Below are positions 13,141 through 56,382 of a stretch of DNA of 64,000 nucleotides, piece after piece. Each line of letters opens with the position of its first letter. Within the stretch, counting starts at the first letter, position 1. The stretch covers positions 496,001 through 560,000 of the forward strand of contig NIVC01000416.1 of the NCBI GenBank assembly GCA_002269645.1. Reading direction: 5' to 3'. The position numbers and the translations under genes were made by a program. The stretch is from Macrostomum lignano. Its lineage: Eukaryota. The notes below the pieces were generated by a model, which did not search any database, was not told where the DNA came from, and worked only from the letters and a program-made list of their open reading frames with translations.

Positions 13141-13415
13141 AAGAGGGGCGCCATAATATACAGGAGAGGGCGCCATAATATAACCGAGATGGGCGCCATA
13201 ATATAACCGAGAGGGGCGCCATAATATACACGAGAGGGGGCCATAAATAACCGAGAAGGGCGCCATAATATACACGAGAGGGGCGCCATAATATACACGA
13301 AAGAGGCGCCATAATATACACGAGAGAAACACCGCCATACTGAGCAAACTGAGGGTGGTGAGGACTTCTTGTAGACCAAAGGAAAAGGGCCCCTACCCCC
13401 TTGAATCCGCCTCTG
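13141..13415. repeat. About 23-bp minisatellite (GAGAGGGGCGCCATAATATACAC)n ending in a TIR-like CCCCTTGAATCCGCCTCTG; probable MITE half
   Basis: Tandem units share the GGGGCGCCA core with the 10845 MITE; only one TIR-like end was found. Confidence 0.55.
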
Positions 13416-13440
13416 CATGCATTTCGTAGCTTATTGGGCC

Positions 13441-16731: not shown

Positions 16732-20125
<3,394 letters not shown>

Positions 20126-23698: not shown

Positions 23699-26600
23699 AT
23701 GCTCCGTGAATTACTCGGCGCAACAATAAAGTTGCTCGCTATGCTATTGCTTGGCTACTACATTGAAAGGTAAGAATATGTGAAGCAAATGAATACTTAA
23801 TTACTATACATGTAGATGCTTTTAGCCAACAGGGCCAAAAGCAGCAAGAGGGAAGGCACAGGCGTGGCGACAAAGGCAGCGGACGAAACGAGTCCTGCGA
23901 TAGCGAATATATTTTATGATTTGAGGCGATTAAAAGGGAAGTCACGAAGCAACGGAATAAAAGCATTATAAGAAAATTAATAAATAAAAAATTTACGAGC
24001 CAAAGCGCTCTCGCAGCGCGCACGAGAGAGCGTGAGCGCACAAATAAAAGGGGGCCGACGCCGCCCACCCCCAACCCAACACCCCCGCCTGCCGGCCGGC
24101 ACCCAGCACCCCACCTTGCGGCAGGGATGCACACGCGCGGGCCGCACGCACAGACGGGCGGAGGGGGCGGCCCCGTCGGCTAAAAACGATTACAGAGTCG
24201 GTTAAAACCGGCCCCTGAAATCGCAACCATATTATCGTACAGCATTGAATTTTTGGTTTTCTTGCAGAGCTCATGCTGGAGACTACTTCTGCTTTCCACA
24301 CGGCACTCGACTGATTGACATCAGCAGCAGTACCAGCATCGGATTTTCGGACCATCGGGTCGTCCCGAAAACGGACCAAGCCATCCAAGAGCTCAATAAG
24401 AATCTGAGTTGTCATTGGATTTTTCATTTCAACCTCAACCGAGATGAGTTAATCCTTGTTCTGAGTGGATTCAACGTAGGCAAAGCGGAGTTCTATCGCC
24501 AAAGACTGGGCCGATCCGCAGAGTTGACAGGCGTACAGCCTCCGAGAATGCGGTACCGTCTTGATGCACCAGCTGAAAGTAGTGAGTATTGGAGGGGAAC
24601 AAATTAACTTAATTAGCTACGAGTACTACGGAATGCAGCACGAAGTGGACTAGAGTTGGAACCGCTGGAAGAGACGTTGCTAGATGGTACATGTATGTCT
24701 AATTGGCTTAGGCATACATATTGGCTTAGACTATGAGTCGTAGATCAAATATTCAGACAAGTGCATACGAGCGTACGGCTCATAATAGACTGCAGAAACG
24801 ATTTTGCCCAAAGCCGTTATAGCTTAACAGTAGAACAATATACGGAACTCCCTGACATTTTCTTGCTGCACCGGAACGGAGCAATGCAGGCACACAAAAG
24901 AAATTCAATAACACGGACTAACCCGGTGCACCTTCTCAAACAAGAATCAAGTCGCCAGCCCCCGGACTGTCGAGATATTCGACGGTTTTGCCAGAAGTTC
25001 GGATTTTTCCGAAATTTTTCCAATAAGTGCTGGTGTATTCAATGCATCCCTGTGCGTCAGTCAATACTGCGCCTCACTGCAGCCTTGCCAAGCCTCCTAA
25101 TTTCATCAGCACATTGACTACAAGGGTCTGCATCGGCTCTGACTTTTACTCGAGGCAGATTTGTTTTCATTGTTCTTTCAATGTCCCTCCATAAACCATT
25201 GTAAGACATCTAGAGAAGCAAAAATACGAATTGAGGCTTATTAGGAATATCGATTTTTTCATAATTAAATCTTTGCAAACAAACCTACATGTCATAGATT
25301 TCATTTTTCTAGAAACAGAATGTCCCCACTGTGCACTAGTCGTCCGATTATATGCCATCCAACTGACTTTTAGCATGATTATTAAAAAATCAAAATGCAC
25401 GTTCATGTGTCCACTGGTCCTCATACTCGTATTGCAGAATGTTCTTTGAACGAAAGTCGAGGTTGGAAGACGGTTGATGAGACAACTCTGGAAATTGTGC
25501 AAATTTCAAGCAGGTAAATTTTTTTATTTTGACTGTTAACAATATATTTCTGAAATCGGGAAGAAATCCGAAAGATAAAAACTGTCAATATTTTTGTTAA
25601 AACGGTTTGGTAAAAGGTTATAAAAGTAAATCAAATCAGATAAAATTAGAATTCGGTACAATACATGCCTCCTGGCTCACAGATTGCTCAGCGAAAGTGG
25701 GTTTAAATCATTACATAATGCCTTGATAGGGCAATCGAAGTAGTCGAAGAACATCAAGACCGAACATTTTGGAAATCATGTATTTAGTACAGGGGTTTGG
25801 CAAACGTTTTACCTCAAGGGCTAGATATGAAATGGGGCTCAGAGAGGAGAGAAGTGAGAGAGATGAGAAAAAGATGAGAGGGAGATTAGAAATAATGGAG
25901 TTGATAAGAGACACAAACCTTAGGCGAGCCGGATTGCTATTGTGAAGTTTCAAATGACCCGAGGGCCGGATAGAGAGGCTTTACGGGCCGGACTTTGCCG
26001 AACTCCTTATTTCGTATAAACATGCACCGCATTTAACTAATGGTGTGAATTTTGGTTCTCAATCAATCTGAGAAATCTGTTAAGCTTATAAACACATGCA
26101 GATTTGATGTCTTCATAGCAATAATATTTGTAGATCAGTGTGCTAAAACTATTATAACTAGAACGTAGGGATCGTCTCCTAGTATAGGCTAATATCGCAT
26201 TCTCAGCTCAGATACACATCGAATTTTCAGAAGCAAACTGTCCATTGAGTTCGATCAAGCGACAGGCAGTCAACATGATTTACAAGGGCTCAGAATCCAG
26301 CTAATGGAACCACAGACCTGCGACAGAGATGTGGTATATTTCGATGGCAACTGTTACATGATTGCACCGGTTCGCAGGTCTCTGATTGACCAACTGGCTG
26401 TTATCAATCGAGAAAGCAGAGTCGCGCAGCTTGCCAGTTTCAATAGCTCCATCACTATGCGGCAATTCTTGGCTCAAAGTGAGATTTTTTAGTGTGTTTT
26501 TATTGAAAATCTTTAAAAATGGCTATAGACAGTGGGTATAGATAATGAGAATTTGTTCGGACTTGATAGATTCTCGATTCACTGTGAATAAAATGAGTCA

Positions 26601-27938
26601 ATTTCTCAATGTGAAAAGTGTGTCCATAGTTATACAGTTATACATGTACATGTTGCAGTGCTGGGCCTCGGAGACAGACTTGCCATACACTACTTAGAAG
26701 GAAAAAAGCAAACTTGGATACCCCTAAATGGCCTCGTCTTTTTTACAAAGGCCTCTTTTATTGAATAGCTCAGTAATTCCAAGCTTCTTCTTCTACAGAC
26801 TTAAAGGCTCTTATTTCTAGGAAAACGACGATTAAATAGAGAATTTCAAACAAAGTATTCTGTAACTTGATTTCTACACACGATTTTTAAAAAACTAAGT
26901 AGAAGTTTAACGGGATTGACTTTATTGTCTATGGCCGAGTACAGTTCTATGGCACAGTGGCTGCTGCTGCAGCGAATCAAGATTCTCGACTTGATCATTG
27001 ATTTATAAAAATATTCAGCTCTTTTTTCAACAATGAATTGAGTTTTACTCAAGTTTAAGCATCTTTTCTTTAAGCAGAGTTTGAAACGATCTTTTTAAGC
27101 AAATAATCACTTTACGAGACTCAGATTGGTAGTCAATAACATTTCTTGTTCATCGAAATTTTCAGGCCAACGCGACCGCATCGGATCCGGCTTCGACGTG
27201 CACAGCAAAGTCCCGATGAACCTTTCGCAACCAGCTCGAATCGGGTTGTTTTATGATGGCGGAAACAAATCCATATATTATCTGGGGCGTAGTTCGAGCG
27301 ATCTGTGCGAGATGAATCTGCTCACTGACGCCCACAAGCTGTAAGCCAATGGAATAAGTCGTTGTACTGTACAGGTATTGCAAAAATATCGGCTTACCTG
27401 ATCCAAAATTTATTCTTTAATCTTTTGTAGATTTTACACGGTGGAATCAGCAGACAATCGAGTATTCTGTGGATCGCTGAGAACTGCTGCAGCGGTAGGA
27501 TTAATCGAATTCAGAAATTGCAGCGAGTCGCTTCCTGCGCTAATCAGTTTTCCAGACGATGGCGGCAAGACCAGCTGTTTCAGCTGCAGCTCTACCTTGC
27601 TGAGCTCTATTCGAGCTCTAGATCCGAGTCCTACGGATGTCCCTGAGCAGAATAAAAGCCTGAAACCAAATGGCGCCGTGGATAAAAATATTTCGAGAGC
27701 AATTGCTTTGGCAACACTCGCTTTCCTTCTACTCGTAGCTGCTTTGGTTTTACGCAAGGTTTGTGCAAAAAAGGAAAAAATACCGGACAAAAGGAAAACT
27801 CAAGAGCCGCCCTATGGAGACAATTCGCCGGAACAAAGTTTGCCGCTGAATAACCAGCCAGACAGAATGGGAACAGCTGACGAGAATGGCTATTACTCGT
27901 ATCCTTTAGGAGAATCTGATATATACGATTCGATATAA
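23699..27938 (+). CDS. Receptor paralog 2: signal peptide, CUB-like, C-type-lectin-like, TM, Tyr-containing tail (about 465 aa)
   Basis: Manual exons 23699-23769, 24268-24581, about 24617-24694 (least certain; implies a 35-38 nt intron), 26231-26478, 27166-27340, 27431-27938. Peptides MLRELLGATIKLLAMLLLGYYIER, LSCHWIFHFN..LILVLSGF, GLRIQLMEPQTC..YFDGNCY, QLASFNS, TM AIALATLAFLLLVAALVL, tail ..DENGYYSYPL..DIYDSI*. Confidence 0.75.
25790..26008. mobile_element. Degenerate hAT-type MITE
   Basis: Imperfect TIRs CAGGGGTTTGGCAAAC / GACTTTGCCGAACTCCTT; TSD ATTTAGTA vs ATTTCGTA (7/8). A related internal sequence recurs at about 37880-38015. Confidence 0.55.
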
Positions 27939-29957: not shown

Positions 29958-32900
29958 ATGTTGATTTTTGGCGTGGTACTCGTACTTGGCTACTTTGTCA
30001 TCGGGTAAGAAACGCCTTTTCAACACATAATATCATGTAATATAACAAAACCGAATGCGTCCATTTTTAGAGCCAATGCCGGACTTTATTTTTGCTTGCC
30101 AAAGGTAGTGCGACTCGTGGACGTAAACGTCACAAATGCCGCTAACTACCACTCATTCGCCGACCATCTCGTTTTTCCGAGGCCCGATGGTGCGCCTTTG
30201 TCTTATGAGGGCCTCGACTGCCAATGGGAGTTTCTCTTCAACCTGAATAAAGACTATATAATTGTTCTTAGTGCATTCGTTCCCGACAAATCAGATTATC
30301 GAAAGCGAGTGATCAGATCGACAGGTTATTCGGAATTGCAGCAGAATTCGCTAATGCAGTACCGGATGTCTGGATGGCTGGCTACAAGTAAGCATAAATA
30401 AGCTCTTATTAAATCAGAAGTGCAAATTATTCGGAATGCGCACTATTAACTCTTTTGCAATGCCACAGAGCTTACAGAGTTTATTGATTTTTTAGCATGC
30501 TCGCCACCGTCAAACGAAAGCTTCAACTGGGAGACTGTGAATTTGAGAACACTGCAAGTTTTGCCAGTTCGAAGTGGGTACGTTCTATTCAAAGCATTTT
30601 ATCCTCCTCCCTACTTCAATTCTATTGATACTGCTGCTCACGATGATCCGTTATTTTAGAAACAAATTGTCGGTTATATTTAAACAAAGTGCTAGAGGAA
30701 AAGTAAACTCATCACCACCTGGTCTAAAAATCCAGCTGATGGAGCCGGGATTCTGCAGCAGAGACATAACGTATTGGAACGGAAACTGCTATAAAATCAC
30801 TCAAGTTGCCAGGTCTCTAACCGAAGAGTTGTTCGAAATTGACCGAGCTAGCGGAATACTACAGTTGGCCAGTTTTAACAGTTCGATCGAGCTGCACAAC
30901 TTTGTGGTTGAAAGTGAGTGATTTTAGAAATTGTCGTTCAATTTATTATCTTAACGGCTTAGCCCGTAGAATAGCCTGCTTATCTGCTGAGCATTTACGC
31001 TCCTATTACAAGCATATCATGGTTATTTAACAGGGAGCATAAGATCACAATAATAGTTTAGACATATTTGGGGGTTAGGACTGTGACGGTGTCAAATTTG
31101 TTTAAATACTTTATGGATTTTTCAAGCATAAAATTTGTGATTTTTAATGTAATTTTGATTTACTAACCTGATATATTCATATCTAATGTAATCGATACTT
31201 AAGTTTGTTTTAATTGCATCTCAAAATGAATTATTTTGAAAGTCATTATTGAGTCTCTTTTTACCGTCTGTCATTCGCGGGCTCTAGCATTGTCTAGTGG
31301 ACCAATCAAACTCCATCTATTACGCGCTAGACTGAAGGCCCTTCATCATATACTACTGTGTTTGACCGCTACAGAAGTCCACTCCTTCGTCTGTAAAGCG
31401 ATCCTGTCAATAAAATAAAAACAAATTATACATTCTCAGCTAAAACTAAAAAAAACCACTACGACTACTGCTCGCTTCGTCACAAGGACCATTAGGGCGT
31501 GGAATCTTTTTGGTTATTCACAAAACCGGAAAGTTTTATGATTTCTCTTTGTCCCCCGCAAACAGAACTGCATGGCATGAGTTAAATATTCTTTAAAGAA
31601 GACTTGCGGGCTGAACAAATTATAAAAAAATTCTTAGAATCAATCAACTCTGTGTTTCACAATGGGCTACAAATATGCAGCTCTCACTGTCGCTCTTGCT
31701 ATACTTTGGCTAGGTTCCCTTCTGTTCGAGACAGATTTATTATTCGCCTCCTACCGACCTATTAATTACATTCAATGCTTTTTTAGTTTTCTCTATTCTA
31801 CGCTCGTAATTTTTGCGAGTTAAAATTTATCAATTATAAAATTTATTGCTAGCCAGAAAGATTATAGACTTGATTTCAAGTAGGCACGGTTTCGCAAATA
31901 CCCAAAAAGCTTTCACTTCTAAAAGATCCAGATTTATATTTCTATGGACGCCACACTGGATTTTCTTGGAAATGGAGACTTAGAAACGAATATTTATCGC
32001 AGCGAAAGATCAAATATACATTTTTATAAGAATACAAGATCTATGATTGCAGCCCCCTCGTCCCGGTCAAATAAGTCACTGGTCATGAGTTGAAACATGT
32101 ATTAGTCCGGCTAAGAAACGATTTGTTTGACCATAACAACATAACAAGGATCAGGACCATAGACTATAGAGCTAGCCTATATTCCGTATCTCTGCTTTTC
32201 TTTCCTTCTTACTTCCAGTACAAAAACTTTAAGAAAACGGTGAGATCCGATTTGTTCATCTCATGCAACTCCTTGAGCACCATCAACCCATGTTGATCAC
32301 CAGACGCCCACTGTCTCTTCTTCTAGGGGCGCCATTCCATGAACGTTTTGATCATCCAAGCAGATTTTTTCTTAGTAGCTTCTGGCACATAACCATCGAC
32401 AACAGCTATGAGCTCTTTTTTTGGCGCAAAATCGAATCCTAGGTCTTTTAGATGTCCCCGTAGTAATTCCATCCGTAAACATCAAATAAAAAAATCGCTA
32501 TATCAGCGTCCATACGAGCTAGTGGCAAAGCCGTCACTAATGTTTTCAGCTTTTATACCTCATGCACAAGCGCTTCAATTACGAAAATTTCCGTACAAGT
32601 TTTTCGCATTAGGAGTGCCTAATTACTACTATGCAGTGTACTTTTGACATGTTTTAGACCAAAAGAAACGCGTTGGAGCAGGCAGGATGGCTCGAAGCAA
32701 ACAGCCGCTTAAGCTGTCAGGAGTTCGAATCGGGATGTTTTACGAAAGCAAATCCAAATCTATACATTATCTAAGTATCGACGATGGCGAATACAAAATC
32801 AAGAAGTTCAGGAATCGTCATTCGCTGTAAGCTGTGGCACAATTTGCTGCGAAAGTTAACTAGTTACTTCAGTGTGTGTACAAAAGTTTAAATAAAATGA

Positions 32901-33380
32901 TCAAATTTCAGTTTCTACAGAGTGCTGTCACCGAATCGCGCTGTGTCGTGTGGCTCGTTGAAAATTGCCGTTGAAAATTGTGGCTCGTATCAGCATAGCA
33001 CTGGCGCTTTGTTAGAATTTATCGAATTCGGAGACTGCGCAGAACCACTTCCCGCGCTGATTAGCTTCTCAGATGCTGAATTCAAAATTATCTGCAACAA
33101 CTGCAGTTCAATTTTTCGCGACTGGATGAAAGCGAAACAAATGACAATAAAAGAAAAATCCGGCACACGTACAAAGCCAAAATCAAGGGCCTCGGCTCGG
33201 TCGCCGATACCGAGACACGAACCCGCGTCTACGGGTTCAGATTCATTCGTTTTTAAAGTGATTGTTCTCTCAGTGGTTCTCTTAGTGTTATCTGTGTTTT
33301 ATTTGTTGCTGTTTCCGAGGAAATTCAGAAGCATTCACGGCTTCCATGGTTGCTCTGTGGCTTATTTTCATTGTTGTTAG
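29958..33380 (+). CDS. Receptor paralog 3: signal peptide, CUB-like, C-type-lectin-like, TM, short tail (about 445 aa)
   Basis: Manual exons 29958-30004, 30071-30387, 30496-30577, 30660-30913, 32658-32826, 32912-33380, with the same intron phases as paralogs 1 and 2. Peptides MLIFGVVLVLGYFVIGANAGLYFC, LDCQWEFLFN..IIVLSAF, GNKLSVIFKQS..GLKIQLMEPGFC..YWNGNCY, TM FVFKVIVLSVVLLVLSVFYLLLF. Confidence 0.75.
32100..32420 (-). pseudogene. Crypton-like (DUF3504-associated tyrosine-recombinase family) fragment
   Basis: The minus strand reads VDGYVPEATKKKSAWMIKTFMEW..ELHEMNKSDLTVFLKF, then after a frameshift FVLEVRRK. This resembles the N-terminal region of Crypton/ZMYM-like proteins as recalled from memory; stops are present. 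Confidence 0.45.
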
Positions 33381-34898: not shown

Positions 34899-37800
34899 AT
34901 GAGGTCGCTTGTATGGCATCTGATTCTTATCCTGCTGTTTGGTTCGAGGGTCAGTGGAAACTGCTCCGACAAGTTAAGGACAGGTAAGTAAAGCCGCAAT
35001 CGATTTCCAACTGTGTCCTGACTTTAGAATGAGATACTGTTGATTTCTACATTTCAGTGACAGTGCAGCTGAGCAGGGCTGACGTTCTGCGCACCTGGCA
35101 ACCCAGCGGTGCGCACTGCCGTTGGTGGGAGAGTCGGCAGTCGGAGACAAACCGATTCCCTGCTGCTGTGCGGTCCGGGCCTCGGTGGTTTGTGATGCAG
35201 CTGAGGCAGCCGATGATGCTGGAGGCGGTGAGCGTGCGAGACTGGGGTGAGTGACGCTGACCGACTCATTCTCATGATGCATGATGAGGCAGAGGGAGTC
35301 TGGGACACAGAGTGTGAGACAGTGTGAAACCAGCTAGCATCTAATTAGCACTCTGAGACAGTGTGAGACCAGCTAGCAGCCAATTAGCACTCTGAGACAG
35401 TGTGAGACCAGCTAGCATCTAATTAGCACTCTGAGACAGTGTGAGACCAGCTAGCATCTAATTAGCACTCTGAGACAGTGTGAGACCAGCTAGCATCTAA
35501 TTAGCACTCTGAGACAGTGTGAGACTAGCAAGCATCTAATTAGCACTCTGAGACAGTGTGAGACCAGCTAGTAGCCAAGCACTCGTGTTGCAGATGGCCA
35601 GTGGCACGCAGCAGCTCCGGTCGGCTCGCCCGTGTCAGCGGTCGGAGCCTCGAGCCTCCCGCTGGAGCTGCAGCTGGAGGATCCGTGCCGTGCCAGCTGG
35701 GAGGCCTTCGGCAGCAGCGACCACTGGAGGCCGTTCGGAGGCGATGTCGATGCCCTACTACAGGCTCCCGTCTCTTTCATCCGACTGAGCAGCGAAATTT
35801 CGTTAAGTTGGCAGGCATTGAACATATCAGGTGAACATGTGAATATGTGCTCCTCTATCACAAAGAAGCTATAGATTAAGTTATAGTTTTTGTAGCTGTC
35901 TCAAATGTAACTCTAAAACACTGCAACTCCCAAGGTCACCCATCGCCAATGGCACTGAACATGTCACTGCACAGTGGCTACATGTACCGCAGCTACGGTT
36001 TAACCGTCAAGCAGCATTTTCATTTAAACATTGAATACTTTGTGAACTACTGCGGCACCGAGAAGATTGCGTGCTGGCTGCGAAAAAAATGAGCAGACTA
36101 AATTGAGAGCAAATCATGTGAGTTCTATTTTTAATAGACGCTGGACAGAGGCTCACGGATGAAACAAGGAAAATATCATTCATAATCGTATCATTTCTAG
36201 CTGAGCTCGGTTCGGAACTCAAACGGCATGACGACGCACAAGTTTGAGCTGAAATTTCGCAAAGGCGATCACGGCAAACTGCTTCAATGCGGCTTGCAAG
36301 CGCGACAGGAAACTGTTCTTCTGGAGGAGCCGCTGTACTGGGAAGGTGAGTCTTGAAGCCAACTTGGAAGTAGAGTTGTTGGCCTGTGAGCACTGTCTGT
36401 TGAGTCTTCTATTCTTGCTCCGCAGTTCCTACACAGACACTGAGCATAATCGAATCGACAGCTTTGGTTCTGGGATATCCGGCTGAAATCTGGGTCTCAT
36501 CGAAATCATTTCCGGAGGCCCAGCATCACTGCTTCATCAGCACTTCGCAGAATCAACGTCTGTTTCTAAAAGTCGAGAAGACGGTGAATTTTCAGACTGT
36601 TATCTGTTACCAAAATCACTTTTGGTATCATCTCCGGTGGTAGGGGGTAGTCCCACCTGGTTAGACACAGGTATCATCTCCTGCGGTAGGGGTAGTCCCA
36701 CCTGGTTAGAAACAGGTATCATCTGCGGTAGGGGTAGTCCCACCTGGTTGGACACAGGTATCATCTCCTGCGGTAGGGGTAGTCCCACCTGGTTAGACAC
36801 AGGTATCATCTCCTGCGGTAGGGGTAGTCCCACCTGGTTGGACACAGGTATCATGGCGGGCACTTGCAGTAGGGATGTCCCAGATGGTTAAGACAGACAT
36901 AGTCTTAAGCTAAGTTAAGAAAAGGACTCTCAATCAAGGTAAGGATAAGAATTGTCAGCTCAACATTTTTTTCAATCCTCCAGAGACTGTCGAAGGCTGT
37001 GGACGAAAAAAACCGAACGGTCTTCCGGGTTCAATCAAAGTTTGCCTTTAATGTTACCCAGTCCGTACTCAACCGAGACATTTTTTGCGAGTGCTCAGCA
37101 GTGTCCGGAGTGAGAAGTCTTGCGCCAGCACGGAATAAGATATCAGAAATTAGTAGTGAGTCAGATCAATTCATTATGAGTGTTCATGCGGAAAATCAAA
37201 TAAACCGATTCAACCGATTTCCAGAGCCCTGTCAGACTACCGTGAACCTTGGTTCGAAACGATACTGGCTGACTGGCGAAACCAGGTTAATTACGGTGAC
37301 CTCCACCCTCTGCAGCATTTGGAATGTTACTCACAGCTGTTACCTGGTGACAACGGACAAAATTTCTTCAAATGTTGCACTTCAAAAAGTTCAGGTACGG
37401 TTCCCTATGTATAGTAGTATAGCGACCTCTGAATCACATGTCAATTACAATACCTCGAGAACATCGAGTTCAGTGCATCCAATTAAATAATACTAATCCC
37501 CACAGCAAGAAAAGTTCAGTAGCGCACACGAGCTCCGCGTGACCGAATCAATGACGTCTCGAAACCGGTGGAAGATTCGATGCCAAGTCAATCAGACTGG
37601 AGTGATTTGTGAAGACTCCGATAGTAGCCAGGGAAACGCGGTGCCAAGTGTTTTTTGTGAGTCTGTCGTACTCGTACGGGGCAGTTATAGGCTGTCGACA
37701 TAGCAACCAAAGAGGTAATTTAAGGCCTTATACTATACTTTCACTGTACAAGGATGTACGTATCAATGCAATCACCTGTGACTAGACCTGAGAAGTCCAA

Positions 37801-40050
37801 ACTGATTGATTGGTAATGAGTACTGTTCATCGCACCAAGCCAAAAGTCAGTATTTCATAAACCCACATTAACTTTAGTTACCGTGGCTCAAGAGAGAAGA
37901 GAGAAGGGAGACGCAGGAGAGAAGAGAGCTGAGAAAATACAAACTTCGAGCGGGTGGGATTGCTATATTGTGAAGTTCCTCCCAACGGCCGGATAGAGAG
38001 GCTTCGCGGGCCGGAGAAAAAGACAAAGATCAATCTGAAGGGCTAGAGCATATGTATTTTTTACATTAATTTGTTGCTTAACTGTTGCTTATTAAACTTT
38101 CCACGAATTATTTTTAGCGTCAGAAGACAAAGCCGCTGTTGATTTGTCAGCCAAGCAGCTCACCGATAAGCACGTCTCAGTGCACGCAATTTTGACCAAC
38201 AGAAACGACCGACTACCGATTGACAACCTGACGTGCGAGTTGTTGGCTTTCACTAAGCTGAAATCTGCTCCGATGAGGGTAAGGAGAATTCATCTATTGG
38301 AATTGCTGATCTAGAATAGAGAAACCAAGCTCAGCAGATTATCCTAGAATTACGTAAAAGGTACAGTGGGCAGTAAGGCATGTAGGGTTAGAGAGTTGCT
38401 TATAACATTGCAGTTGGTTTGTTTGATAATTCTGAATTTCACCTTTTCTCTGATCTGATCTGCGGCTCTCTGTATGCATTTAGAGACGTGATAAAGGTCA
38501 CCAGGCGCGTCACCTGACATCGCGTAATTCAATTTTTCAGCAATATATTCCAATGCATCACGACGACCAAAACATCTGGAGCTCAGTTGTTGCTGTGCCA
38601 ATCATTTCTCAGGCAACCAGAATCGCAATTCACTGCTTGGCATTGCAAATTTACTTTGGCGAGACAGTATTTCAGTCAGTGTCTCAGGCTGATGTGGCTT
38701 TATTGCAAACTAATATTCAAAAAACCGACGCAAATGCACTTCAAGCATTTGCTCAGACAGAAGTTCCGGTACAGTCGAAGTGGAACCCAGATACTGACAA
38801 GTCAAACTCGATGCTGTTAATAGTGATCGCTGCGGCTGTTCAGTTGGTCATTCTGGTTTTTGTTGTCTTGGCAACATGGCGAATTGCGAAAGTAAGTTTA
38901 ACAAAATTGTATTTTGAAAGATTTAGGCAGCATATGAATGAATGAATACAAATCTGTGTTTCAAAGCATGCACATTTTGATGGCCAATTGCCAGATCACA
39001 TGCACAAAATGATTTGGGAAACTTTCGGCTTGACGAAGTCGAAAGATGTTCAAAGTAACGAGTATAATAATTGATACACCTGCCTTAATGGCAGATGTGC
39101 AACCGACAGCTCAGCCGCAGCTATTGCGCAGCGCATCTGAAGGCTGCGTACGGCTGTTCAGTCCAAGGACTGGGGGGTCGCCACACACCCTCAATTACCC
39201 CAGCTAATGCTGGCACCAATTTTACAGCTGGGTGAACTGAAGCAATGCAGAGTTAAGTGTCTTGCTCAAGGACACAAATTGTTTCAGTGGGATCAGGAAT
39301 CGAACCCCCGACCCGCCAGTCGTGAGTCAGACGCTCTAACCACTAGGCTACGACCTAGTATAGTGTAGCTACAAAGTATATCTAGATAAACACTATGGGA
39401 CGGGTCTCCCACAGACAGATTTGAAGTCACTACCATAACTGCCGGTACAGTGGCCCTGACGTAGTTTGAAAATAACGATTCACACCTACTCGTATGAGAG
39501 CCAATTCCTCCTAAAGTACAAGAGTATTTAGGCCTGACGATTATAGAAAGTCAAAGGGCCGCTGTCGTGTTAAGCGTGTGTATGAGTAGTGCAGAAGTCT
39601 GCAGCATCGCCTCAGTGCAGCTGGTTGTGAGACGATGCCACTGAAAGCGTTGTTGTTCTCCTCCAATTGTTATTGCGATTGGCCAATTAGCTCGTAAAAA
39701 CAAACTTGCAGATTCGAAATCGACGTCGCGCTGTCGCGGAAGACGAAATCAGCAGACCCAACGGCGGCAGCGATGCAGTTGAACTGACCGTCACCAACAG
39801 TGCAGAGTCTGGGGGTGCGACGGCAACAGCTGCGCCGTACGATTATCCCAGCAGCGATTGGAGCACCTTCGAGCAGCAGGATTCTGCAGGAACTGCGGGG
39901 CCAATCTATGAGCAGGTGTCTATAGACTCCGGTGCCAACAACAGACCACCACGGCAGAATCTGCCGCTACCGCCGCCGCCGCCGCCGCCGCCTGAGCAGC
40001 AGCAGCAATCTGACGAGTCTCCCTACATAAACTGGCAAGGGAGAGGATAA
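34899..40050 (+). CDS. Orphan type I receptor: signal peptide, discoidin(F5/8C)-like, about 4 Ig-like domains, TM, Tyr/Pro-rich tail (about 780 aa, 12 exons; one apparent +1 frameshift)
   Basis: Manual exons 34899-34983, 35058-35246, 35594-35830, 35896-36117, 36201-36345, 36426-36583, 36984-37155, 37225-37394, 37506-about 37610/37655, 38118-38278, 38541-38891, 39712-40050. Peptides MRSLVWHLILILLFGSRVSG, PRWFVMQLRQPMMLEAVSV, PVSFIRL, ELKFRKGDHGKLLQC, SKFAFNVT..DIFCEC, TM MLLIVIAAAVQLVILVFVVLATW. Confidence 0.68.
35315..35570 (+). repeat. 39-bp intronic minisatellite (GAGACAGTGTGAGACCAGCTAGCATCTAATTAGCACTCT)n
   Basis: About 6.5 copies filling intron 2 of the Ig receptor. Confidence 0.9.
36636..36853 (+). 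repeat. 45-bp intronic minisatellite
   Basis: About 5 copies of GGTAGGGGTAGTCCCACCTGGTTAGACACAGGTATCATCTCCTGC. Confidence 0.9.
39065..39355 (-). mobile_element. tRNA-derived CORE-type SINE, family 2 (full length)
   Basis: On the minus strand: A box TAGCCTAGTGG, B box GGTTCGATTCC, a central TGTGTCCTTGAGCAAGACACTTAACTCTGCATTGCTTCAGTTCACCCAGCTGTAAAA segment and an (ATT)n tail. Confidence 0.8.
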
Positions 40051-40224
40051 TGATGGATATACTTAGTCGTAGTACACAGAGTGATCAATTGGCATGCTGT
40101 TTATATTTAAAATCAACTTGAGTTGGTCTGAATTCCTCATTGCAGGGGACCCCCAAGGTCAGAACTAGGCAAAATTCTATCTACTAACGAACCAATGTGA
40201 GAAACCGGCTCATTTCATGTTTTA

Positions 40225-41415
40225 TATGACGCTTATTTTATGTTTGAATTGACGCTTCTTTTATGGTTTGACAAGACGCTTCTTTTATGGTTTGACATGA
40301 CGCTTCTTTTATGGTTTGACATGACGCTTCTTTTATGTTTGACTTGACGCTTCTTTTATGGTTTGACAAGACGCTTCTTTTATGGTTTGACATGACGCTT
40401 CTTTTATGGTTTGACATGACGCTTCTTTTATGTTTGACTTGACGCTTCTTTTATGGTTTGACAAGACGCTTCTTTTATGTTTGAATTGACGCTTCTTTTA
40501 TGGTTTGACATGACGCTTCTTTTATGTTTGACTTGACGCTTCTTTTATGTTTGACTTGACGCTTCTTTTATGGTTTGACATGACGCTTCTTTTATGGTTT
40601 GACATGACGCTTATTTTATGTTTGACTTGACGCTTCTTTTATGATTTGACATGACGCTTCTTTTATGGTTTGACTTGACGCAATTCTTTTATGGTTTGAC
40701 ATGACGCTTCTTTTATGGTTTGACATGATGCTTCTTTTATGGTTTGATATGACGCTTCTTTTATGGTTTGATATGACGCTTCTTTTATGGTTTGACTTGA
40801 CGCTTCTTTTATGGTTTGACATGACGCTTCTTTTATGGTTTGACTTGACGCTTCTTTTATGGTTTGACAAGACGCTTCTTTTATGTTTGAATTGACGCTT
40901 CTTTTATGTTTGAATTGACGCTTCTTTTATGTTTGAATTGACGCTTCTTTTATGTTTGAATTGACGCTTCTTTTATGTTTGAATTGACGCTTCTTTTATG
41001 TTTGAATTGACGCTTCTTTTATGGTTTGACATGACGCTTCTTTTATGATTTGACATGACGCTTCTTTTATGGTTTGACTTGACGCAATTCTTTTATGGTT
41101 TGACATGACGCTTCTTTTATGGTTTGATATGACGCTTCTTTTATGGTTTGATATGACGCTTCTTTTATGGTTTGACTTGACGCTTCTTTTATGGTTTGAC
41201 TTGACGCTTCTTTTATGGTTTGACTTGACGCTTCTTTTATGGTTTGACATGACGCTTCTTTTATGGTTTGACTTGACGCTTCTTTTATGGTTTGACCATA
41301 AAAGACTGGACATGACGCTTCTTTCAAATTTGACATGACGCTTTTTTGTTTGACATGACACCTTTTTATGGTTTGAAATGACGCTTTTATCACTTTTGAC
41401 ATGACGCTTCTTTTG
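40225..41415 (-). repeat. 23-24-bp satellite array (minus strand: CATAAAAGAAGCGTCATGTCAAAC)n
   Basis: Direct tandem repeat; the monomer is related to the arrays at 376-2330 and 3757-8075. Confidence 0.95.
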
Positions 41416-42288: not shown

Positions 42289-43589
42289 TGCATTTCTAGT
42301 TAGATTGTTGCATTTTTTAATGTTGCCAAGTGTAATAAATCATTTAATCATAATTTTTCCACCTCTATGGCAGAGAAATCCCGTGAATATTGGCCAATTT
42401 TCTACAAATATCTAAAAAACATTAATTAACATTGACTTATGATACTTGTAAAGTTGCAAAAATCATTTCAGGAATAAGATTACACGCGATTTGAATGTAA
42501 ATATAGTTTTCAATCTTGAAATAATATTGATAATTTGTTCGAGTAAAATAAACCAAGAAATTATCAAACAATTACAAATAAATGCAATTATTCTACTCAT
42601 AGTAGAGTAGCATGGTGAAATTTTTTTGAACTTCATTATGTAGTATAAATAAATAAGTAATCTGCTTGTATTTTTAAGATCCAGCAAAAGCACAAGCACA
42701 CAAATAAAGACAGAAAATTTATACACAGAAAAAATCAAAGTAAAAACTGGTGCACGTTAACAATATTATAACTATGCATATTGATAAAGTATTATCGTAT
42801 TACACAATAAAATATTAATAATACATATAGAAAACAAAACAGGCAGCTTTAAAATGACATATTGCAACTCTTATAGACTACTAACAATAGTAGTAGTAAT
42901 ATAAGTACGGTATGCTGCACTGCACAAAGAGAATCAAGTATAGAGAAAACTGATATTATAGTGCAGGGTGTACTTTCAGATTTAGGAAACTTCAACTCCA
43001 ACTTACCTTAGACAGAGGTATGCCAAAAAATAAAAACTGAATTCAGACATCAATAGCACATTTATACATCTAGCCATATATTTATTCATAATACGAAAGA
43101 TTTCGATGCCTAATACTAACAGTAGTATGAATAGTAACTTACGATACCATCATAATTTTTAATCAGTCAATCCGATACGAAGAAAGAATTCGTTAACTAC
43201 ACTTTAGTGATACAATTAATCATTATAATACACGAGATAACAGAATGTTTACAGTGCAAAATGTGCCGCTAGTATAGATAACTGAAATTGTTGCCAAAGA
43301 AGCTGAATTGCGTTTAGACTGAGCATAAAGGCACTTCATTTTTTGAGCGTTTTAATAACTAAATAAGCTTTTCTTCGAAACAGAACATTTCCTTATTCCC
43401 GGTGGATAGAAACGGGCGTGACTGTCCTCAGCCAATAGAAATTTGAAGGTCGATATGTACTTATAATATCAAGAGTGTTTCAACAGGTTACACAAGAGCG
43501 CAATGGCCTTTTCTCATTTCTCACTTCTATCACTGTGGCCTCTGACCCTCATGCCCTCTCTTTCCTCATATCATTAACCCTCATACCCT

Positions 43590-44385
43590 TTTCCCTTCAT
43601 GCCTTTTCTGCACCTCATGCCCTATCTCCCTTCATGCCCACTCTCCCTTCATGCCCTCTCTCCCCTCATGCCCTCTCTCACTTCATTCCCTCTCACTTAA
43701 TGCCCTCTCTCCCTTCATGCCCACTCTCCCTTCATGCCCTCTCTCACTTCATGCCCTCTCTCCCCTCATGTCCTCTCTCCCTTCATGCCCTCTCTCCACT
43801 CATGTCCTCTCTCACTTCATGCCCTCTCTCCCCTCATGTCCTCTCTCACTTCATTCCCTTTCTCCCCTCATGCCCTCTCTCACTTCATTCCCTCTCTCAC
43901 TTAATGCCCTCTCTCCCTTCATGCCCTCTCTCCCCTCATGCCCTCTCTCACTTCATGCCCTCTCTCCCCTCATGTCCTCTCTCACTTCATGCCCTCTCTC
44001 CCCTCATGTCCTCTCTCCCTTCATGCCCTCTCTCCCCTCATGTCCTCTCTCACTTCATGCCCTCTCTCCCCTCATGTCCTCTCTCACTTCATGCCCTCTC
44101 TCCCCTCATGTCCTCTCTCACTTCATTCCCTTTCTCCCCTCATGCCCTCTCTCACTTCATTCCCTCTCTCACTTAATGCCTTCTCTCCCTTCATGCCCTG
44201 TCTCCCCTCATGCCCTCTCTCACTTCATGCCCTCTTACCCTTCATACCCTCTCTCCTTTCATGTCATCTCACCTTCATGTCATCTCTCCCTTCATGCCTT
44301 CTCTCCCTTCATGCCTTCTCTCCCTTCATGCCCTCTCTCAGTTCATGCCCTCTCTTAGTTCATGCCCTCTCTCCCTTCATCCCCT
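43590..44385 (+). repeat. 17-bp pyrimidine-rich minisatellite (CCTTCATGCCCTCTCTC)n
   Basis: Direct tandem repeat; source of the MPSLPSCPL artefact ORFs. Confidence 0.93.
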
Positions 44386-44576
44386 CTTCACCTCAACACC
44401 AACCCTCATACTCTCCCTACCATCATATCCTCACTCACCATTTTTCTCACTCTTTATTCCAATCGTACAAAGACAGTTATATATTTAACTAAGAATGTCA
44501 CAAGCCGGGAGAAAAGTACAAGCAAACAATGCATTTACAGACAGTTACATAATGAGCAAAGGCACACCTCAGGCGC

Positions 44577-46000
44577 TCACAGGAACTGGCCGCCAGCGCC
44601 ATTAGCAGCGGCAGCTGTAGACCTCACCTGTAAACTGTGCGCACTGGCCCGCAGCTCGGCTAGCCGCAGGTTCACGTCAGTCAGCCGTTTATCCCAGACG
44701 CGTCGTTCCGCTTGCAGCCGGTCGTGCAGCTGGCGCTCCTGTGCCAGACAGTCGGCCAGATTGGCCTGGCTCAGCTGCTGCAGCTCGGCTTCCTGCTGGT
44801 GCAGACGCTGTTCCAGGCTGCCGGCGCTCTGGCAGGACAGCTGCAACAGGCGCAGCTCTGCGGGGCCGGTTGGGGTGCGCTGATCTCTCTTGTCTATCTT
44901 TTGTCTATCTCTTTTGTCTATCTCTCCTGTCTATCTCTCCTGTCTATCTTTTTTGTTTATCTCTCGTCTATCTCTCTTGTCTATCTCTTCTATCTCTTTT
45001 GTCTATCTCTCATGTCTATCTCTTCTGTCTATCTCTTCTGTCTATCTCTTCTGTCTATCTCTTCTGTCTATCTCTTCTATCTATCTCTCTTGTCTATCTC
45101 TTTTGTCTATCTCTTTTGTCTATCTCTTCTGTCTATCTCTTCTGTCTATCTCTTCTGTCTATCTCTTCTGTCTATCTCTCTTGTCTATCTCTTTTGTCTA
45201 TCTCTTTTGTCTATCTCTTCTGTCTATCTCTTCTGTCTATCTCTTCTGTCTATCTCTTCTGTCTATCTCTTCTGTCTATCTTTTCTGTCCATCTCTCTTG
45301 TCTATCTCTCTTGTCTATCTTTTCTGTCTATCTTTTCTGTCCATCTCTCTTGTCCATCTCTCTTGTCTATCTTTTCTGTCTATTTCTCATGTTAATCTCT
45401 CAGGCCTATCTTTAATTTTATTATTGTTTTATTTTCCTTGCAAACTCGATACCGTTTATCCCTCACCCTCCTCGATTCCCAGCAACTACTCCTCCCAAAC
45501 CAACTGCACACCAAAGAATTCTTATTCTCACCCTTATCCAGCTCCTCAATTCGCAGCCTGTTCATCTCAATCTCGTGCTCCTGCATCAGCAGCCGCTGTT
45601 TCAACTGTCGTCTGACATTCTCCGACGCAGCTGCGTCCAGCTGCTCGGCGCTTGACGTTGAACAGTTGCTGCTGCCGCTGCCGTTGGTGTGCAAAGATGC
45701 CGGTCTCAGCTGATTGTTCTGACGCTGGGGCGGCTGCTGCTGATGCTGCTGTCCAGCCGCAGTCAGTTCTGTTCGTTGTAAAATCAACTCGGCGTGTTGC
45801 GGCGCTCGGCTTAGCGACGCCGCCATTGGTTCGTTTGGCGCCATTGGGCGTTCGCCATTTGGCCAGCGCAGTACCAGGGTGTAGCGGCCGGGTAGGCCTG
45901 CCGTCCTGGCCACGGCCATGATCACATCGTGACAGCTGGTGTCCCTGGTCACATTGCACACAGTTCTAGGCTGGCCTTCGAACCAGATGTTTAGTTCCAT
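44577..46000 (-). CDS. RASSF8: N-terminal RASSF (RASSF7/8-like) Ras-association protein
   Basis: MELNIWFEGQPRTVCNVTRDTSCHDVIMAVARTAGLPGRYTLVLRW..ERPMAPNEP matches the RASSF7/8 RA domain. Exons 46000-45532 and 44857-44577 (coiled coil; a possible further donor at 44627). Confidence 0.85.
44890..45385 (+). repeat. 13-bp minisatellite (TGTCTATCTCTTC)n in the RASSF intron
   Basis: Direct tandem repeat. Confidence 0.93.
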
Positions 46001-50030: not shown

Positions 50031-53000
50031 TCAGAGACTATTCGTACTAGCGCTGCTCTGGAAGCCAACATTAACAGACAGACTAGAAGCAGCTGTTGCC
50101 GCGGCTTCAGCCGGAGGCGCCGAGGCCAGCAAAGCTTCGTCAGAGTTGAGCGTAGGCAGGTACAGATCCTCCATGTTGGGCAGCACGAACACGCGATGAA
50201 ATTCAGCTACGAGTTTCTTAGAGATCAGGTCGGAAATTTTCCTAGCCGTGAATTCTTTCTCGCCAATCTTCGGCCTGGAGGTGAGCACCAGCTGCGGCAC
50301 GGGGTGGAAGGCTACCCACACTCTATCGGACGGCGGGAACGGCATGTTTAGCACCAGGGTGCCGCGCAGAGAGTGAACGTCTACTGACAGTAGTATCCTG
50401 GTGTTGCTAACCGAGTCGACGGCTTTGCGAAAGAATTTGTATTTGCCTGTAAATGCAGTGCGTTTATAGCTTGGAGCATATGCTGATGAAGACTGCTTGG
50501 ATTAGCCTTGCTTCTTAGAATTGGAAGGGCGATTCTCATAGCGACTGGAGAGAGGGCGATTCTCATAGCGATTGGAGGGAGGGCGATTCTCATAGCGATT
50601 GGAGAGAGGGCGATTCTCATAGCGATTGGAGGGAGGGCGTTTCTCATAGCGATTGGAGAGAGGGCGATTCTCATAGCGAATGGAGAGAGGGCGATTCTCA
50701 TAGCGATTGGAGAGAGGGCGATTCTCATAGCGATTGGAGAGAGGGCGATTCTCATAGCGATTGGAGGGAGGGCGTTTCTCATAGCGATTGGAGAGAGGGC
50801 GATTCTCATAGCGATTGGAGGGAGGGCGTTTCTCATAGCGATTGGAGAGAGGGCGATTCTCATAGCGATTGGAGGGAGGGCGTTTCTCATAGCGATTGGA
50901 GAGAGGGCGATTCTCATAGCGACTGGAGAGAGGGCGATTCTCATAGCGATTGGAGAGAGGGCGATTCTCATAGCGATTGGAGAGAGGGCGATTCTCATAG
51001 CGATTGGAGGGAGGGCGTTTCTCATAGCGATTGGAGAGAGGGCGATTCTCATAGCGACTGGAGAGAGGGCGATTCTCATAGCGATTGGAGGGAGGGCGAT
51101 TCTCATAGCGATTGGAGAGAGGGCGATTCTCATAGCGATTGGAGGGAGGGCGTTTCTCATAGCGATTGGAGAGAGGGCGATTCTCATAGCGACTGGAGAG
51201 AGGGCGATTCTCATAGCGATTGGAGAGAGGGCGATTCTCATAGCGATTGGAGAGAGGGCGATTCTCATAGCGATTGGAGGGAGGGCGTTTCTCATAGCGA
51301 TTGGAGAGAGGGCGATTCTCATAGCGATTGGAGGGAGGGCGTTTCTCATAGCGATTGGAGAGAGGGCGATTCTCATAGCGATTGGAGGGAGGGCGTTTCT
51401 CATAGCGATTGGAGAGAGGGCGATTCTCATAGCGACTGGAGAGAGGGCGATTCTCATAGCGATTGGAGAGAGGGCGATTCTCATAGCGATTGGAGAGAGG
51501 GCGATTCTCATAGCGATTGGAGGGAGGGCGTTTCTCATAGCGATTGGAGAGAGGGCGATTCTCATAGCGATTGGAGGGAGGGCGTTTCTCATAGCGATTG
51601 GAGAGAGGGCGATTCTCATAGCGATTGGAGGGAGGGCGTTTCTCATAGCGATTGGAGAGAGGGCGATTCTCATACCGAATGGAGAGAGGGCGATTCTCAT
51701 AGCGATTGGAGGGAGGGCGTTTCTCATAGCGATTGGAGAGAGGGCGATTCTCATAGCGATTGGAGGGAGGGCGTTTCTCATAGCGATTGGAGAGAGGGCG
51801 ATTCTCATAGCGATTGGAGGGAGGGCGTTTCTCATAGCGATTGGAGAGAGGGCGATTCTCATAGCGATTGGAGGGAGGGCGTTTCTCATAGCGACTGGAG
51901 AGAGGGCGATTCTCATAGCGATTGGAGAGAGGGCGATTTTCATAGCGATTGGAGAGAGGGCGATTCTCATAGCGATTGGAGGGAGGGCGTTTCTCATAGC
52001 GATTGGAGAGAGGGCGATTCTCATAGCGATTCTTAGAGAAGCTCTAAATATCGATTTTCAAAGCAATCACACTGCATAATTGAAGCAGGCCTTCAAATCT
52101 CACCCATCAGATGGTGGAACTTCTCAGACTGGGCCACCTTATCAATAAACTTGATCACTTTGCGCGAATGCTTTCCGCCGACATTGCCAAGCGCTGGATC
52201 GTCTGTGTCGGAATCTGCGTCGCTCTGGCCACCGGACTCGTCAGTGGTGGACTCGCCAGAGTCTTCCATCTCGGAGTTGGTGGCAGCCAGGCGTTGCGGA
52301 ATCGAGTCGGTGAACGGACAGGGACCGGCGCCGGGCGAGGAGGCCGCAGTTGATGGCGGCGGCGAAGGCGCTGAGGCGATGGAGTCGGCCGAGGCTGAGG
52401 AGACGACCCTGCATTAAAATATCATAATTATTACCAACCAGTTTCCTTTTACAAGCTCGCTTTCAGAAGAATGAAACTTTACGAACTTCACAATCTTCAA
52501 TATTCCCGAACTCCAATTTTCACAAACTCCTAATCTTCACAAACTCCAATCTTCACAAACTCCAATCTTCACAAACTGCAATCTTCCCGAACTCTAATCT
52601 TCACAAACTGAAATCTTCACAAACTGAAATCTTCACAAACTGAAATCTTCACAAACTCCAATCTTCACAAACTCCAATCTTCACAAACTCCAATCTTCAC
52701 AAACTCCTATCTTCACAAACTCCAATCTTCACAAACTCCAATCTTCACAAACTCTAAGCTTCACAAATCCCAAACTGCAAACTTCACAAAGTGCAAACGC
52801 CAGACTCAAAGCTGCGACTTACCTGGCCCCAGCAGCGGACTCCTCGTGCCCGCCTGTCTGGGCCCCGCCCCGCCCCTGCAGGCGATGTAGATTGATACGA
52901 GTAACCAGACTGGCCGAGCAGCCTCCAGGATAGTCAATGTCCAGATGGAACCAGATGCCCCTGTCATTGATATGCGGCTTATGCAGTTTCCTCAGCACTG

Positions 53001-56000: not shown

Positions 56001-56382
56001 AATCGGTGGCAATTTTAGATGGCGCAGAAGACAGCGACAGCGGAGGAGGTGGGGGCGGTGGAGGCTGAGACGGCGGCGGCGGTGGCGGCGAAGAAGATGG
56101 CGGAGGCTGGGCAGCAGTGGCAACAGTCGATTGACGAGCGAAGGCGCTTGGCGGCCGCGGCTTCGTCTGCGGTTTCGGCACCGCGTTGAGCAAGTCTTCA
56201 AACGAGCCGCCGCCGCCAACGCCTGTCTTTCCAGAAGTTGCGGCTGGCTGCTGATGCCTCGGCGGCGAAGATGACGGCGAAAAGTCCATGTCATCGTCAT
56301 CGCCGGTGTCGCGCAGTGCAGAGAATTTAAACGTCTGGCTGCTCAAACCGCCGCCAGAAGCTGCTTTACGCCGACTGTCCAT
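50031..56382 (-). CDS. TEX2: TEX2-like (Nvj2 family) TM-PH-SMP lipid-transfer protein
   Basis: Exons about 56382-55921 (least certain, weak donor), 55182-54163, 53256-52823, 52408-52104, 50446-50031. Motifs [91 protein letters not shown]. Confidence 0.9.
50525..52030 (+). repeat. 27-bp minisatellite filling the last TEX2 intron (GGGCGATTCTCATAGCGATTGGAGAGA)n
   Basis: About 55 copies; it explains the 547-aa and 523-aa ORFs. Confidence 0.97.
52510..52790 (+). repeat. 16-bp minisatellite (CTCCAATCTTCACAAA)n in a TEX2 intron
   Basis: Direct tandem repeat. Confidence 0.9.
53465..54105. mobile_element. Compound SINE block: CORE-SINE (-) 53465-53760, inverted partial core (+) about 53780-53865, 5'-truncated family 1 SINE (+) about 53870-54105
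   Basis: Sequence similarity to 39065-39355 and 9395-9700. Confidence 0.8.
55310..55790 (+). repeat. 24-bp G-rich minisatellite (TCAGGGTTGGGTTCAGGCATAGCT)n in TEX2 intron 1
   Basis: Direct tandem repeat; source of the PEPNPEAM artefact ORF. Confidence 0.95.

Follow-up and report, generated by a model that had tools for sequence, protein, structure and literature searches.

A 12-exon gene of Macrostomum lignano encodes a putative surface receptor of an often tandemly arrayed family whose near-identical N-terminal domain is most likely homogenised by gene conversion

We report the structure and family context of a gene on the forward strand of a 64,000-nucleotide stretch of genomic sequence from the free-living flatworm Macrostomum lignano (NCBI GenBank assembly GCA_002269645.1, contig NIVC01000416.1, positions 496,001 to 560,000; this whole stretch is called the window, and positions are counted from its first letter). 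The gene runs from an ATG at 34899 to a TAA ending at 40050 and consists of 12 joinable exons of compatible phase, whose predicted product carries an N-terminal domain that we call the head, a stalk that is immunoglobulin (Ig)-like in the model of a paralogue, a transmembrane (TM) helix and a cytoplasmic tail. An original prediction, made from the sequence letters, is largely confirmed in its observations and partly supported in its interpretation, the gene being an unannotated member of an uncharacterised family. That description passed over a frameshift in Ig domain 1 and a near-identical head cassette, intron included; the head, which appears to be maintained by gene conversion, is the point of real interest. 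The features of the locus are as follows.

34899-34983 (+): exon 1, with the start codon, a signal-like segment (amino acids 1-20) and the conserved Cys22
35058-35246 (+): exon 2, first half of the head domain (TVQLSRADVLRTWQPSGAHCRWWES...RWFVMQLRQPMMLEAVSVRDW), inside the homogenised block
35247-35593 (+): intron 2, conserved with its flanking exons; a 39-bp minisatellite occupies 35315-35571 (6.6 copies)
35594-35830 (+): exon 3, second half of the head; the first ~135 nucleotides (to ~35730, ...LELQLEDPCRASWEAF) are homogenised and the remainder is divergent
35935-36041 (+): exon 4, first part of Ig-like domain 1
36083-36089 (+): A7 homopolymer, which moves the ancestral exon 4 frame into a TGA
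36201-36345 (+): exon 5, second part of Ig-like domain 1 (...KFELKFRKGDHGKLLQC)
36426-36583 and 36984-37155 (+): exons 6 and 7, Ig-like domain 2 (Cys290/Cys342)
37225-37394 and 37506-37656 (+): exons 8 and 9, Ig-like domain 3 (Cys394/Cys447)
38118-38278 and 38541-38891 (+): exons 10 and 11, Ig-like domain 4 (Cys511/Cys557), juxtamembrane stalk and TM helix
38811-38879 (+): TM segment, amino acids 616-638
39712-40050 (+): exon 12, cytoplasmic tail of 113 amino acids, then the stop codon
39838-39849, 39904-39918, 39961-39993 and 40024-40035 (+): tail motifs YDYP, IYEQV, poly-proline and YINW, respectively

All of the exons have AG acceptors and GT donors, and these sites, together with the phases, uphold the 12-exon chain that had been proposed, save for the acceptor of exon 4, which is corrected to 35935. 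The UniProt fragment P0001 (A0A1I8GGG2, 442 amino acids) is 100% identical to the window product where the two align, and its junctions coincide with those of the chain from exon 3 to exon 11 with the exception of the exon 4 acceptor, which P0001 and all of the paralogues place at 35935. The alternative at 35896 is not used by P0001 and would add 13 amino acids that are absent from every paralogue, so the product has 754 amino acids and not 767. The signal peptide, the TM helix and the 113-amino-acid tail with its YDxP, proline-rich and YINW elements are all present in the spliced product, as had been described, and the ectodomain holds eight N-x-S/T sequons. The introns lie in phase 1 at module borders and in phase 0 within modules, an arrangement classically associated with shuffled extracellular domains. 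No RNA gene was detected over the locus by Rfam or ARAGORN.

A word-indexed protein search with the window product returned 21 matches, all named M. lignano, and when 1.84 billion cluster representatives were searched exhaustively with an HMMER profile, 36 proteins reached E<=1e-3 and 23 of these E<=1e-30; the source names of ten weaker clusters among the 36 are again all M. lignano. Nephrin, Kirre, DDR, contactin and other named families were absent from the names seen in this profile search, in agreement with the original prediction, which did not recognise the domain combination as that of a named family. Orthology to nephrin/Kirre, DDR or contactin was rejected since no such relative appears among the names seen in the profile search, Pfam gives no Fn3 or kinase match, and the TM helix is followed by a cytoplasmic tail rather than by a glycosylphosphatidylinositol signal. 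A search with the divergent paralogue P0038 matched only P0038 itself. As judged by sequence comparison, then, the window gene is no lone orphan, as had been supposed, and is one member of a large family, seen only in M. lignano (36 clusters) and often tandemly arrayed. Its paralogues are 30-45% identical to it at the protein level; P0002, the closest full-length one, reaches 41-47%, with about 95% in the head.

Four paralogous loci from the same assembly, L001 and L002 among them, were compared with the window gene. At L002 six or more diverged members stand in tandem in one orientation, each of them beginning with the head cassette, and the GenBank gene for P0011 spans 77 kb of this array (10001-87216), joining the 5' part of one member to the 3' part of another over at least four intervening paralogues. 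In one copy of this array, L2e (55680-56395), exon 2 of the head cassette is frameshifted and the donor position does not read GT; this copy looks like a pseudogene or the product of assembly indels. Annotation suffers accordingly: tandem arrays are currently mis-merged, as in the 77-kb "gene", and lectin-like neighbours have been joined onto some of the models. The names that UniProt assigns automatically to the family are mutually inconsistent (VWFD, PLAT, Spatacsin_C, DUF2531, NPHN, F5/8 type C), are spurious and should be ignored. The GenBank models of this assembly derive from an RNA-seq-guided transcriptome assembly (PMC5730564), so paralogues such as P0002, P0011, P0012 and P0016 are transcribed with such an exon structure. 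Nothing was found on the family in the literature, by its gene identifiers or in two supplementary data sets.

Comparison of the window gene with the four loci by blastn gave a single matching region, 35050 to ~35730, which occurs 13 times at 91-98% identity; there was no other DNA similarity between the gene and its paralogues in this search, and no DNA-level conservation of exon 1 among paralogues was seen when it was looked for. The region corresponds to a block of concerted evolution made up of exon 2, the whole of intron 2 and the first ~135 nucleotides of exon 3 (35058-~35730). Mean pairwise identities over 11 of the 13 copies, with GC content and GC content at third codon positions (GC3) where computed, are given by segment.

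100 nucleotides upstream of exon 2: 54%, the alignment background
Exon 2: 96.6% (GC 0.65, GC3 0.76)
Intron 2, first 70 nucleotides: 92.7%
Intron 2, last 40 nucleotides: 99.5%
Exon 3, first 132 nucleotides: 92.3% (GC3 0.82)
Exon 3, rest: 56.6% (GC3 0.56)

On its left side the cassette starts in all copies with the opening base of exon 2. Its right-hand limit falls inside exon 3, after "...EDPCRASWEAF", at 35708-35739 across copies and at 35834 in L001, a spread of about 30 nucleotides, or 100 with L001. Intron 2 varies between 152 and 1400 nucleotides among the copies, its length seemingly tracking the content of the 39-bp minisatellite, the unit of which is TGAGACAGTGTGAGACCAGCTAGCATCTAATTAGCACTC. 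The same minisatellite also occurs outside any cassette, at 4510-5578 of L001 (about 27 copies), just upstream of a lectin-like gene, and it could be a hotspot of recombination or conversion.

Within the coding part of the cassette the proportions of synonymous (pS) and nonsynonymous (pN) differences are 0.037 and 0.028, a ratio of 0.77, and most differences are singletons. The block is GC-rich (GC 0.65-0.71, GC3 0.76-0.82) beside the other exons (GC 0.44-0.60, GC3 0.44-0.65). A four-gamete test finds 60 of 171 informative site pairs incompatible, and the variants H/L67, T68 and R/D95 are shuffled within one stalk subfamily (P0008 against P0009 and P0013). The DV1 genome is partly duplicated (PMC5730564), and the copy pairs L2a/L4a and L2f/L4b are recent duplicates, which leaves about nine independent lineages among the copies. 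Purifying selection alone was rejected, the intron being as conserved as the exons and pN/pS about 0.8. Because conservation of the intron, a near-neutral pN/pS, mosaicism and GC enrichment occur together, recurrent and probably GC-biased interlocus gene conversion of the shared head is the most likely explanation of these sequences.

It might be argued instead that the head block is an exon cassette that spread recently, by exon shuffling or as a mobile unit placed ahead of unrelated Ig-stalk genes, with no continuing conversion; a similarity that begins in all copies with the opening base of exon 2 and the presence of the intron minisatellite outside the family (L001 4510-5578) would fit such an origin. 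We consider it very improbable. Heads that are not homogenised stand at the equivalent position in P0038, whose head is 37% identical to that of the window gene and occupies the same place in the gene, and in P0043, whose head is still more divergent and yet homologous to that of the family (hhalign P=0.0037 over 98 columns), so the head is ancestral to the family, which argues against its recent arrival. The right border, moreover, lies within an exon and is variable, and the mosaic variants and the 60 incompatible pairs of 171 also speak for conversion; terminal repeats or target-site duplications were not seen, though no dedicated search for them was made. The cassette borders coincide with the edges of an invariant protein segment, and under recurrent conversion the borders seem pinned at the edges of this constrained segment, in that selection upon it would keep the homology needed for conversion while the trapped intron rides along.

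The original prediction had given the stalk about four C2-set-like Ig domains. Pfam gives no Ig-family match for the window protein, only noise, but the structure model agrees with the prediction. This model was built with AlphaFold2 for the paralogue P0002, from a 13-member family alignment, and in it residues ~200-600 form four beta-sandwich domains (pLDDT 70-90), which are followed by the TM helix and a disordered tail. Foldseek found 654 PDB matches to the model at E<=1e-3, headed by domains D1-D4 of SYG-2 (3.7e-12), the IgM B-cell receptor, PirB/LILRB3, KIT and ICAM-5 at 9-14% identity, and these are best taken, at the level of a model, as a generic multi-Ig signal and not as orthology. 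Some relatives do approach or pass the threshold of the Pfam family C2-set_2 (P0037 with 21.4 bits against a cut-off of 21, P0046 with 16.9 and P0026 with 15.1). In the window protein the pairs Cys290/342, Cys394/447 and Cys511/557 have the separation of Ig B- and F-strand cysteines (about 45-60 residues), their spacing in domains 2-4 being 46-53 residues in three consecutive modules of about 100 amino acids, and domain 3 is the best conserved of the stalk (EPC..., SxWNVSHSC, VNQSG). Domain 1 as assembled has Cys236 alone, its partner lying in the frameshifted segment. The modelled paralogue thus supports a stalk of four Ig-like, C2-set-like domains, with two exons to each domain. Matches of the full 767-amino-acid model to TMEM154 and to the poly-proline of Tob1, in Pfam and among PDB sequences, were dismissed as noise.

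In P0002, which is encoded at L001, exon 4 extends to "...CWLLRSEGRLSAVH" followed by gtgagc, and the equivalent in the window reads "...IACWLRKK" and then a stop. With six A residues in place of the A7 run, exon 4 of the window gene would continue as ...VNYCGTEKIACWLRKNEQTKLRANH and end at a strong GTGAGT donor at ~36117-36118; as assembled, the chain closes solely via a GTGAAC donor at 36042, which is weaker and not ancestral. The extra A may be a real mutation or a homopolymer error; the gene is possibly damaged in Ig domain 1. P0001 also skips the segment of exon 4 that is lost here, and if the A0A1I8 entries come, as we presume, from the earlier ML2 assembly, this skip is independent support.

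Could the window copy then be decaying or non-functional, with a real frameshift and a 12-exon chain that stays open through a fortuitous cryptic donor? The TGA that A7 brings into a frame kept open by P0002, the weakness of GTGAAC relative to GTGAGT, the same skip in P0001 (on the presumed ML2 origin), the lack of a full-length record of the product in our look-up and the frameshifted head of at least one other family copy, L2e, are what one would expect of such a gene. None of the remaining exons is interrupted, however, and all have canonical splice sites; the tail motifs are undamaged and common to P0002, PacBio-based assemblies often carry homopolymer indels, and P0008, P0009 and P0013 naturally lack most of Ig domain 1, which therefore seems dispensable. 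We regard decay of the window copy as unlikely.

The head spans amino acids ~29-171, some 140 residues, and is strand-rich when modelled alone, in an AlphaFold2 run that used a seven-sequence alignment including the divergent P0038 head. It had been described as F5/8C-like, that is, of the discoidin type, and of this claim the richness in beta structure stands, whereas membership of the discoidin family hangs on one short motif in sub-threshold matches. PF00754 (F5/8 type C) has no match at E<=10 in the window protein or in six homogenised heads, and scores 13 bits (E=0.11, cut-off 28.2) against the P0038 head. With hhalign the head aligns to the factor VIII C2 domain at P=0.065 (the factor VIII sequence was checked against PDB) and to a six-sequence discoidin profile at E=0.18 over 22 columns, and the P0043 head meets the discoidin profile at P=0.075; five of the sequences in this profile are provisional. 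The weak matches of the P0038 head to PF00754 and of the head to factor VIII C2 and to the six-sequence profile align with a single short strand motif, "WLQVDL...V". Like DDR1/2, the neuropilins and Caspr, the protein has an N-terminal beta-rich domain of about 140 amino acids with "W...(x)WLxxxL...V..V", which aligns to the WLQVDL strand of factor VIII C2; unlike them, it scores below threshold, does not combine the domain with a kinase, CUB or laminin-G domain, and lacks a flanking disulfide pair. The cysteines at hand are Cys22, Cys49 and Cys123, with none near the C-terminal end (amino acids ~165-171), where the closing disulfide of a discoidin domain would need one. Discoidin membership is accordingly a lead from sequence that is not established as a domain assignment, and the head may be a new extracellular domain. 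Foldseek returned nothing below E=0.4 for the head model. Among PDB sequences the head profile drew de novo TIM barrels and the EP3 receptor, dismissed as noise, and its word-indexed search drew short M. lignano fragments with conflicting names (DUF2531, Bgal_small_N, NPHN, F5/8 type C) that were judged unreliable.

The cytoplasmic tails fall into several classes, and P0002 retains the motif order of the window tail (YDxP, a second tyrosine, a proline-rich stretch and YINW). The classes, and the tail of the distant P0043, carry the following motifs, some of which resemble the immunoreceptor tyrosine-based inhibitory (ITIM) or switch (ITSM) motifs.

Class 1 (window gene and P0002): YD[YV]P, [IV]YE[QR], proline-rich stretch, YINW
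Class 2: YDYP, then SVYLVL (ITIM-like)
Classes 3 and 4: Y(Y)EDPDxYxxI, one of the two ending SPYVNY
Class 5, acidic: GHY[DE]LDG...FVxY
P0043: VVYAQV and TEYTEI (ITIM/ITSM-like)

The pattern Y[DE]xP...Yxx[ILV] recurs in four of the five classes, which otherwise have little similarity, and this suggests constraint on the tails. SH2 domains prefer pYxxP in Crk, pYDxP/V in Nck and pYxN in Grb2, and poly-proline is bound by EVH1 and SH3 domains and by profilin. When phosphorylated on tyrosine, the tail of the window protein and of P0002 would recruit SH2 adaptors of the Crk/Nck and Grb2 types, and its poly-proline stretch would recruit proteins of the SH3, EVH1 or profilin type, so that SH2/EVH1 docking and phosphotyrosine signalling are the predicted function of these motifs.

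Upstream of the receptor gene lie three co-oriented genes for type-I TM proteins, which are mutual paralogues.

~19090-20125 (+): type-I TM gene with a putatively C-type-lectin-like ectodomain
~26286-27938 (+): the same
~30721-33380 (+): the same

Their designation as a lectin cluster holds as regards three co-oriented, paralogous genes. As to the lectin label itself, Pfam gives nothing for them at E<=10, and a five-sequence profile of the family draws matches from PDB that are all C-type lectin-like domain (CTLD) chains (20 of 20) but are weak, at E 0.003-0.1 (CD69 0.003, DC-SIGNR 0.006, NKG2A 0.014), and cover the N-terminal half of the domain; "lectin" is used here in the sense of putatively CTLD-like and does not imply sugar binding. 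They are also paralogous to the N-terminal parts of the fused UniProt models P0007 and P0014. Since the lectin-like family flanks receptor genes in L001 and L002 as well, the association of the two kinds of gene is recurrent. The tails of the upstream genes hold tyrosines, for example ...GYYSYP...DIYDSI in the second gene.

Other elements of the window were noted in passing.

36624-36854: 45-bp tandem repeat in intron 6 (5.2 copies, 92% identity)
39287-39360 (-): tRNA-like stretch in intron 11 (tcgtagcctagtggttagagcg...ggttcgattcc), which resembles the head of a tRNA-derived short interspersed element; here ARAGORN finds no tRNA and Rfam a sub-threshold chance match alone
40219-41413: 24-bp satellite (GTTTGACATGACGCTTCTTTTATG, about 45 copies), directly 3' of the receptor gene
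13400-16350 (+): open reading frames (ORFs) with endonuclease-like and reverse-transcriptase-like motifs (for example FVDFRKAFDSV), GC 0.65; probably a non-long-terminal-repeat retrotransposon with a broken frame
17940-18610, 43470-45620, 50380-52080 and 55260-55790: long ORFs on both strands that are tandem repeats (including PEPNPEAM units) and would mislead ORF-based gene finding
45392-46000 (-) and 52819-55230 (-): apparently genuine downstream coding exons, including a 433-amino-acid ORF whose N-terminus is rich in proline and alanine; they do not seem to belong with the receptor locus

Taking these observations together, we hold with moderate confidence that the window gene belongs to a family of type-I surface receptors, restricted to Macrostomum, in which a shared head evolves in concert and the stalks and tails have diversified. 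Each member would comprise a signal peptide, the beta-rich head of about 140 amino acids, four Ig-like domains, one TM helix and a tail with tyrosine motifs, and conversion would keep the head cassette near-identical across contigs while stalk and tail diverge deeply, to 30-45% protein identity. Since all of the members would present the same head, they probably bind a common ligand or partner, coupled to differing stalks and to several types of tail; by analogy with the systems discussed below, we infer that the head recognises this ligand and that the tails give different outputs.

Several points weigh against this picture. No transcript evidence for the window copy was found, and an exact look-up of the full-length models (754, 767 and 779 amino acids) in a 15-billion-protein collection found none on record; expression of this copy is something that we infer. 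As assembled, the window has an A7 run that disrupts the ancestral exon 4 frame and a GTGAAC donor whose use removes about 25 residues, the first cysteine of Ig domain 1 among them, and the evidence for the Ig fold was obtained on a 41-47% identical paralogue rather than on the window protein. AlphaFold2 assigns the head no fold with confidence (pLDDT of about 25 in the full-length P0002 model and 47 alone) and no homologue of it was detected outside M. lignano, given which its binding of a ligand is a guess. Short-read polishing of a multicopy PacBio assembly could inflate the identity of the copies somewhat, and the tail motifs, at 4-5 residues, can arise by chance.

The same architecture would also suit a cell-adhesion molecule that is not a signalling receptor, the head binding homophilically or between paralogues in the manner of nephrin/SYG-2 or ICAM and the tail linking to actin. 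The ectodomains of SYG-2 (the nephrin orthologue), ICAM-5, nectin and contactin are among the best Foldseek matches, YDxP-type and poly-proline elements are typical actin-linking motifs, and an identical head on many paralogues would permit mutual binding. We think adhesion rather doubtful, however, as those matches are generic multi-Ig ones that extend equally to immune receptors (IgM B-cell receptor, PirB, LILRB3, KIT), the proteins show no Fn3 or PDZ-binding features, and the tail classes diversify as they do in immune-type receptor families. Like nephrin/SYG-2 and Kirre/SYG-1, the M. lignano protein has a multi-Ig, C2-set-like ectodomain, a single TM helix and tail tyrosines in YDxV/P-type motifs, which in nephrin recruit Nck; unlike nephrin/SYG-2, it has no Fn3 domain and bears an extra, non-Ig head, and the SYG-2 match, at 12% identity, is generic.

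Returning to a receptor family with a concerted head, a more ambitious version of this reading would have dozens of receptors with a constant head and variable stalks and tails, GC-biased conversion that is perhaps seeded by the minisatellite, and tail classes (YDxP/YxN, ITIM-like SVYLVL, YEDPDxYxxI and HYDLDG) that signal differently, in genes interspersed with those of C-type-lectin-like receptors, the whole being a flatworm counterpart of the paired activating and inhibitory receptors of vertebrates in immune, self/non-self or mating-partner recognition. This we offer tentatively, as a possibility well short of even. In Siglec-5/14, Siglec-11/16 and the CEACAM genes, ligand-binding 5' exons are homogenised by gene conversion and the tails differ (PMC4042635, PMC5701461, PMC2832619). 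The M. lignano genes share with them a distal domain that is near-identical down to its intron, a sharp 3' drop in identity, differing tails and clustering; they differ in that the head, for which no fold can be recognised, is not of the Ig V-set type, that it is common to at least 11 copies (probably dozens) on several contigs where the vertebrate sets have two or three, that the Ig domains of the stalk are deeply diverged too, and that a partner of the activating kind, with its charged TM residue, was not seen.

The nearest invertebrate parallel is Hydractinia Alr, a lineage-specific cluster of Ig superfamily receptors with cryptic Ig domains (PMC9546547). There, as here, type-I TM proteins have Ig-like domains that are visible by structure prediction only, belong to large species-restricted tandem families and carry tyrosine motifs in their tails, whereas the distal domain of Alr is variable and that of the M. 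lignano proteins constant, and the two have no sequence homology. Lineage-specific families of this Ig-superfamily-like kind are common in invertebrates, and the usual pattern is reversed in M. lignano, where the membrane-distal domain is frozen and the rest diverges; with an intron inside the conserved block, the head cassette makes a clean natural example of domain-restricted concerted evolution. M. lignano is a model for regeneration and for sexual conflict that can be made transgenic, and should the head recognise one shared ligand and the tails pass on distinct signals, this family would become a first candidate for a recognition system of the paired-receptor type in flatworms.

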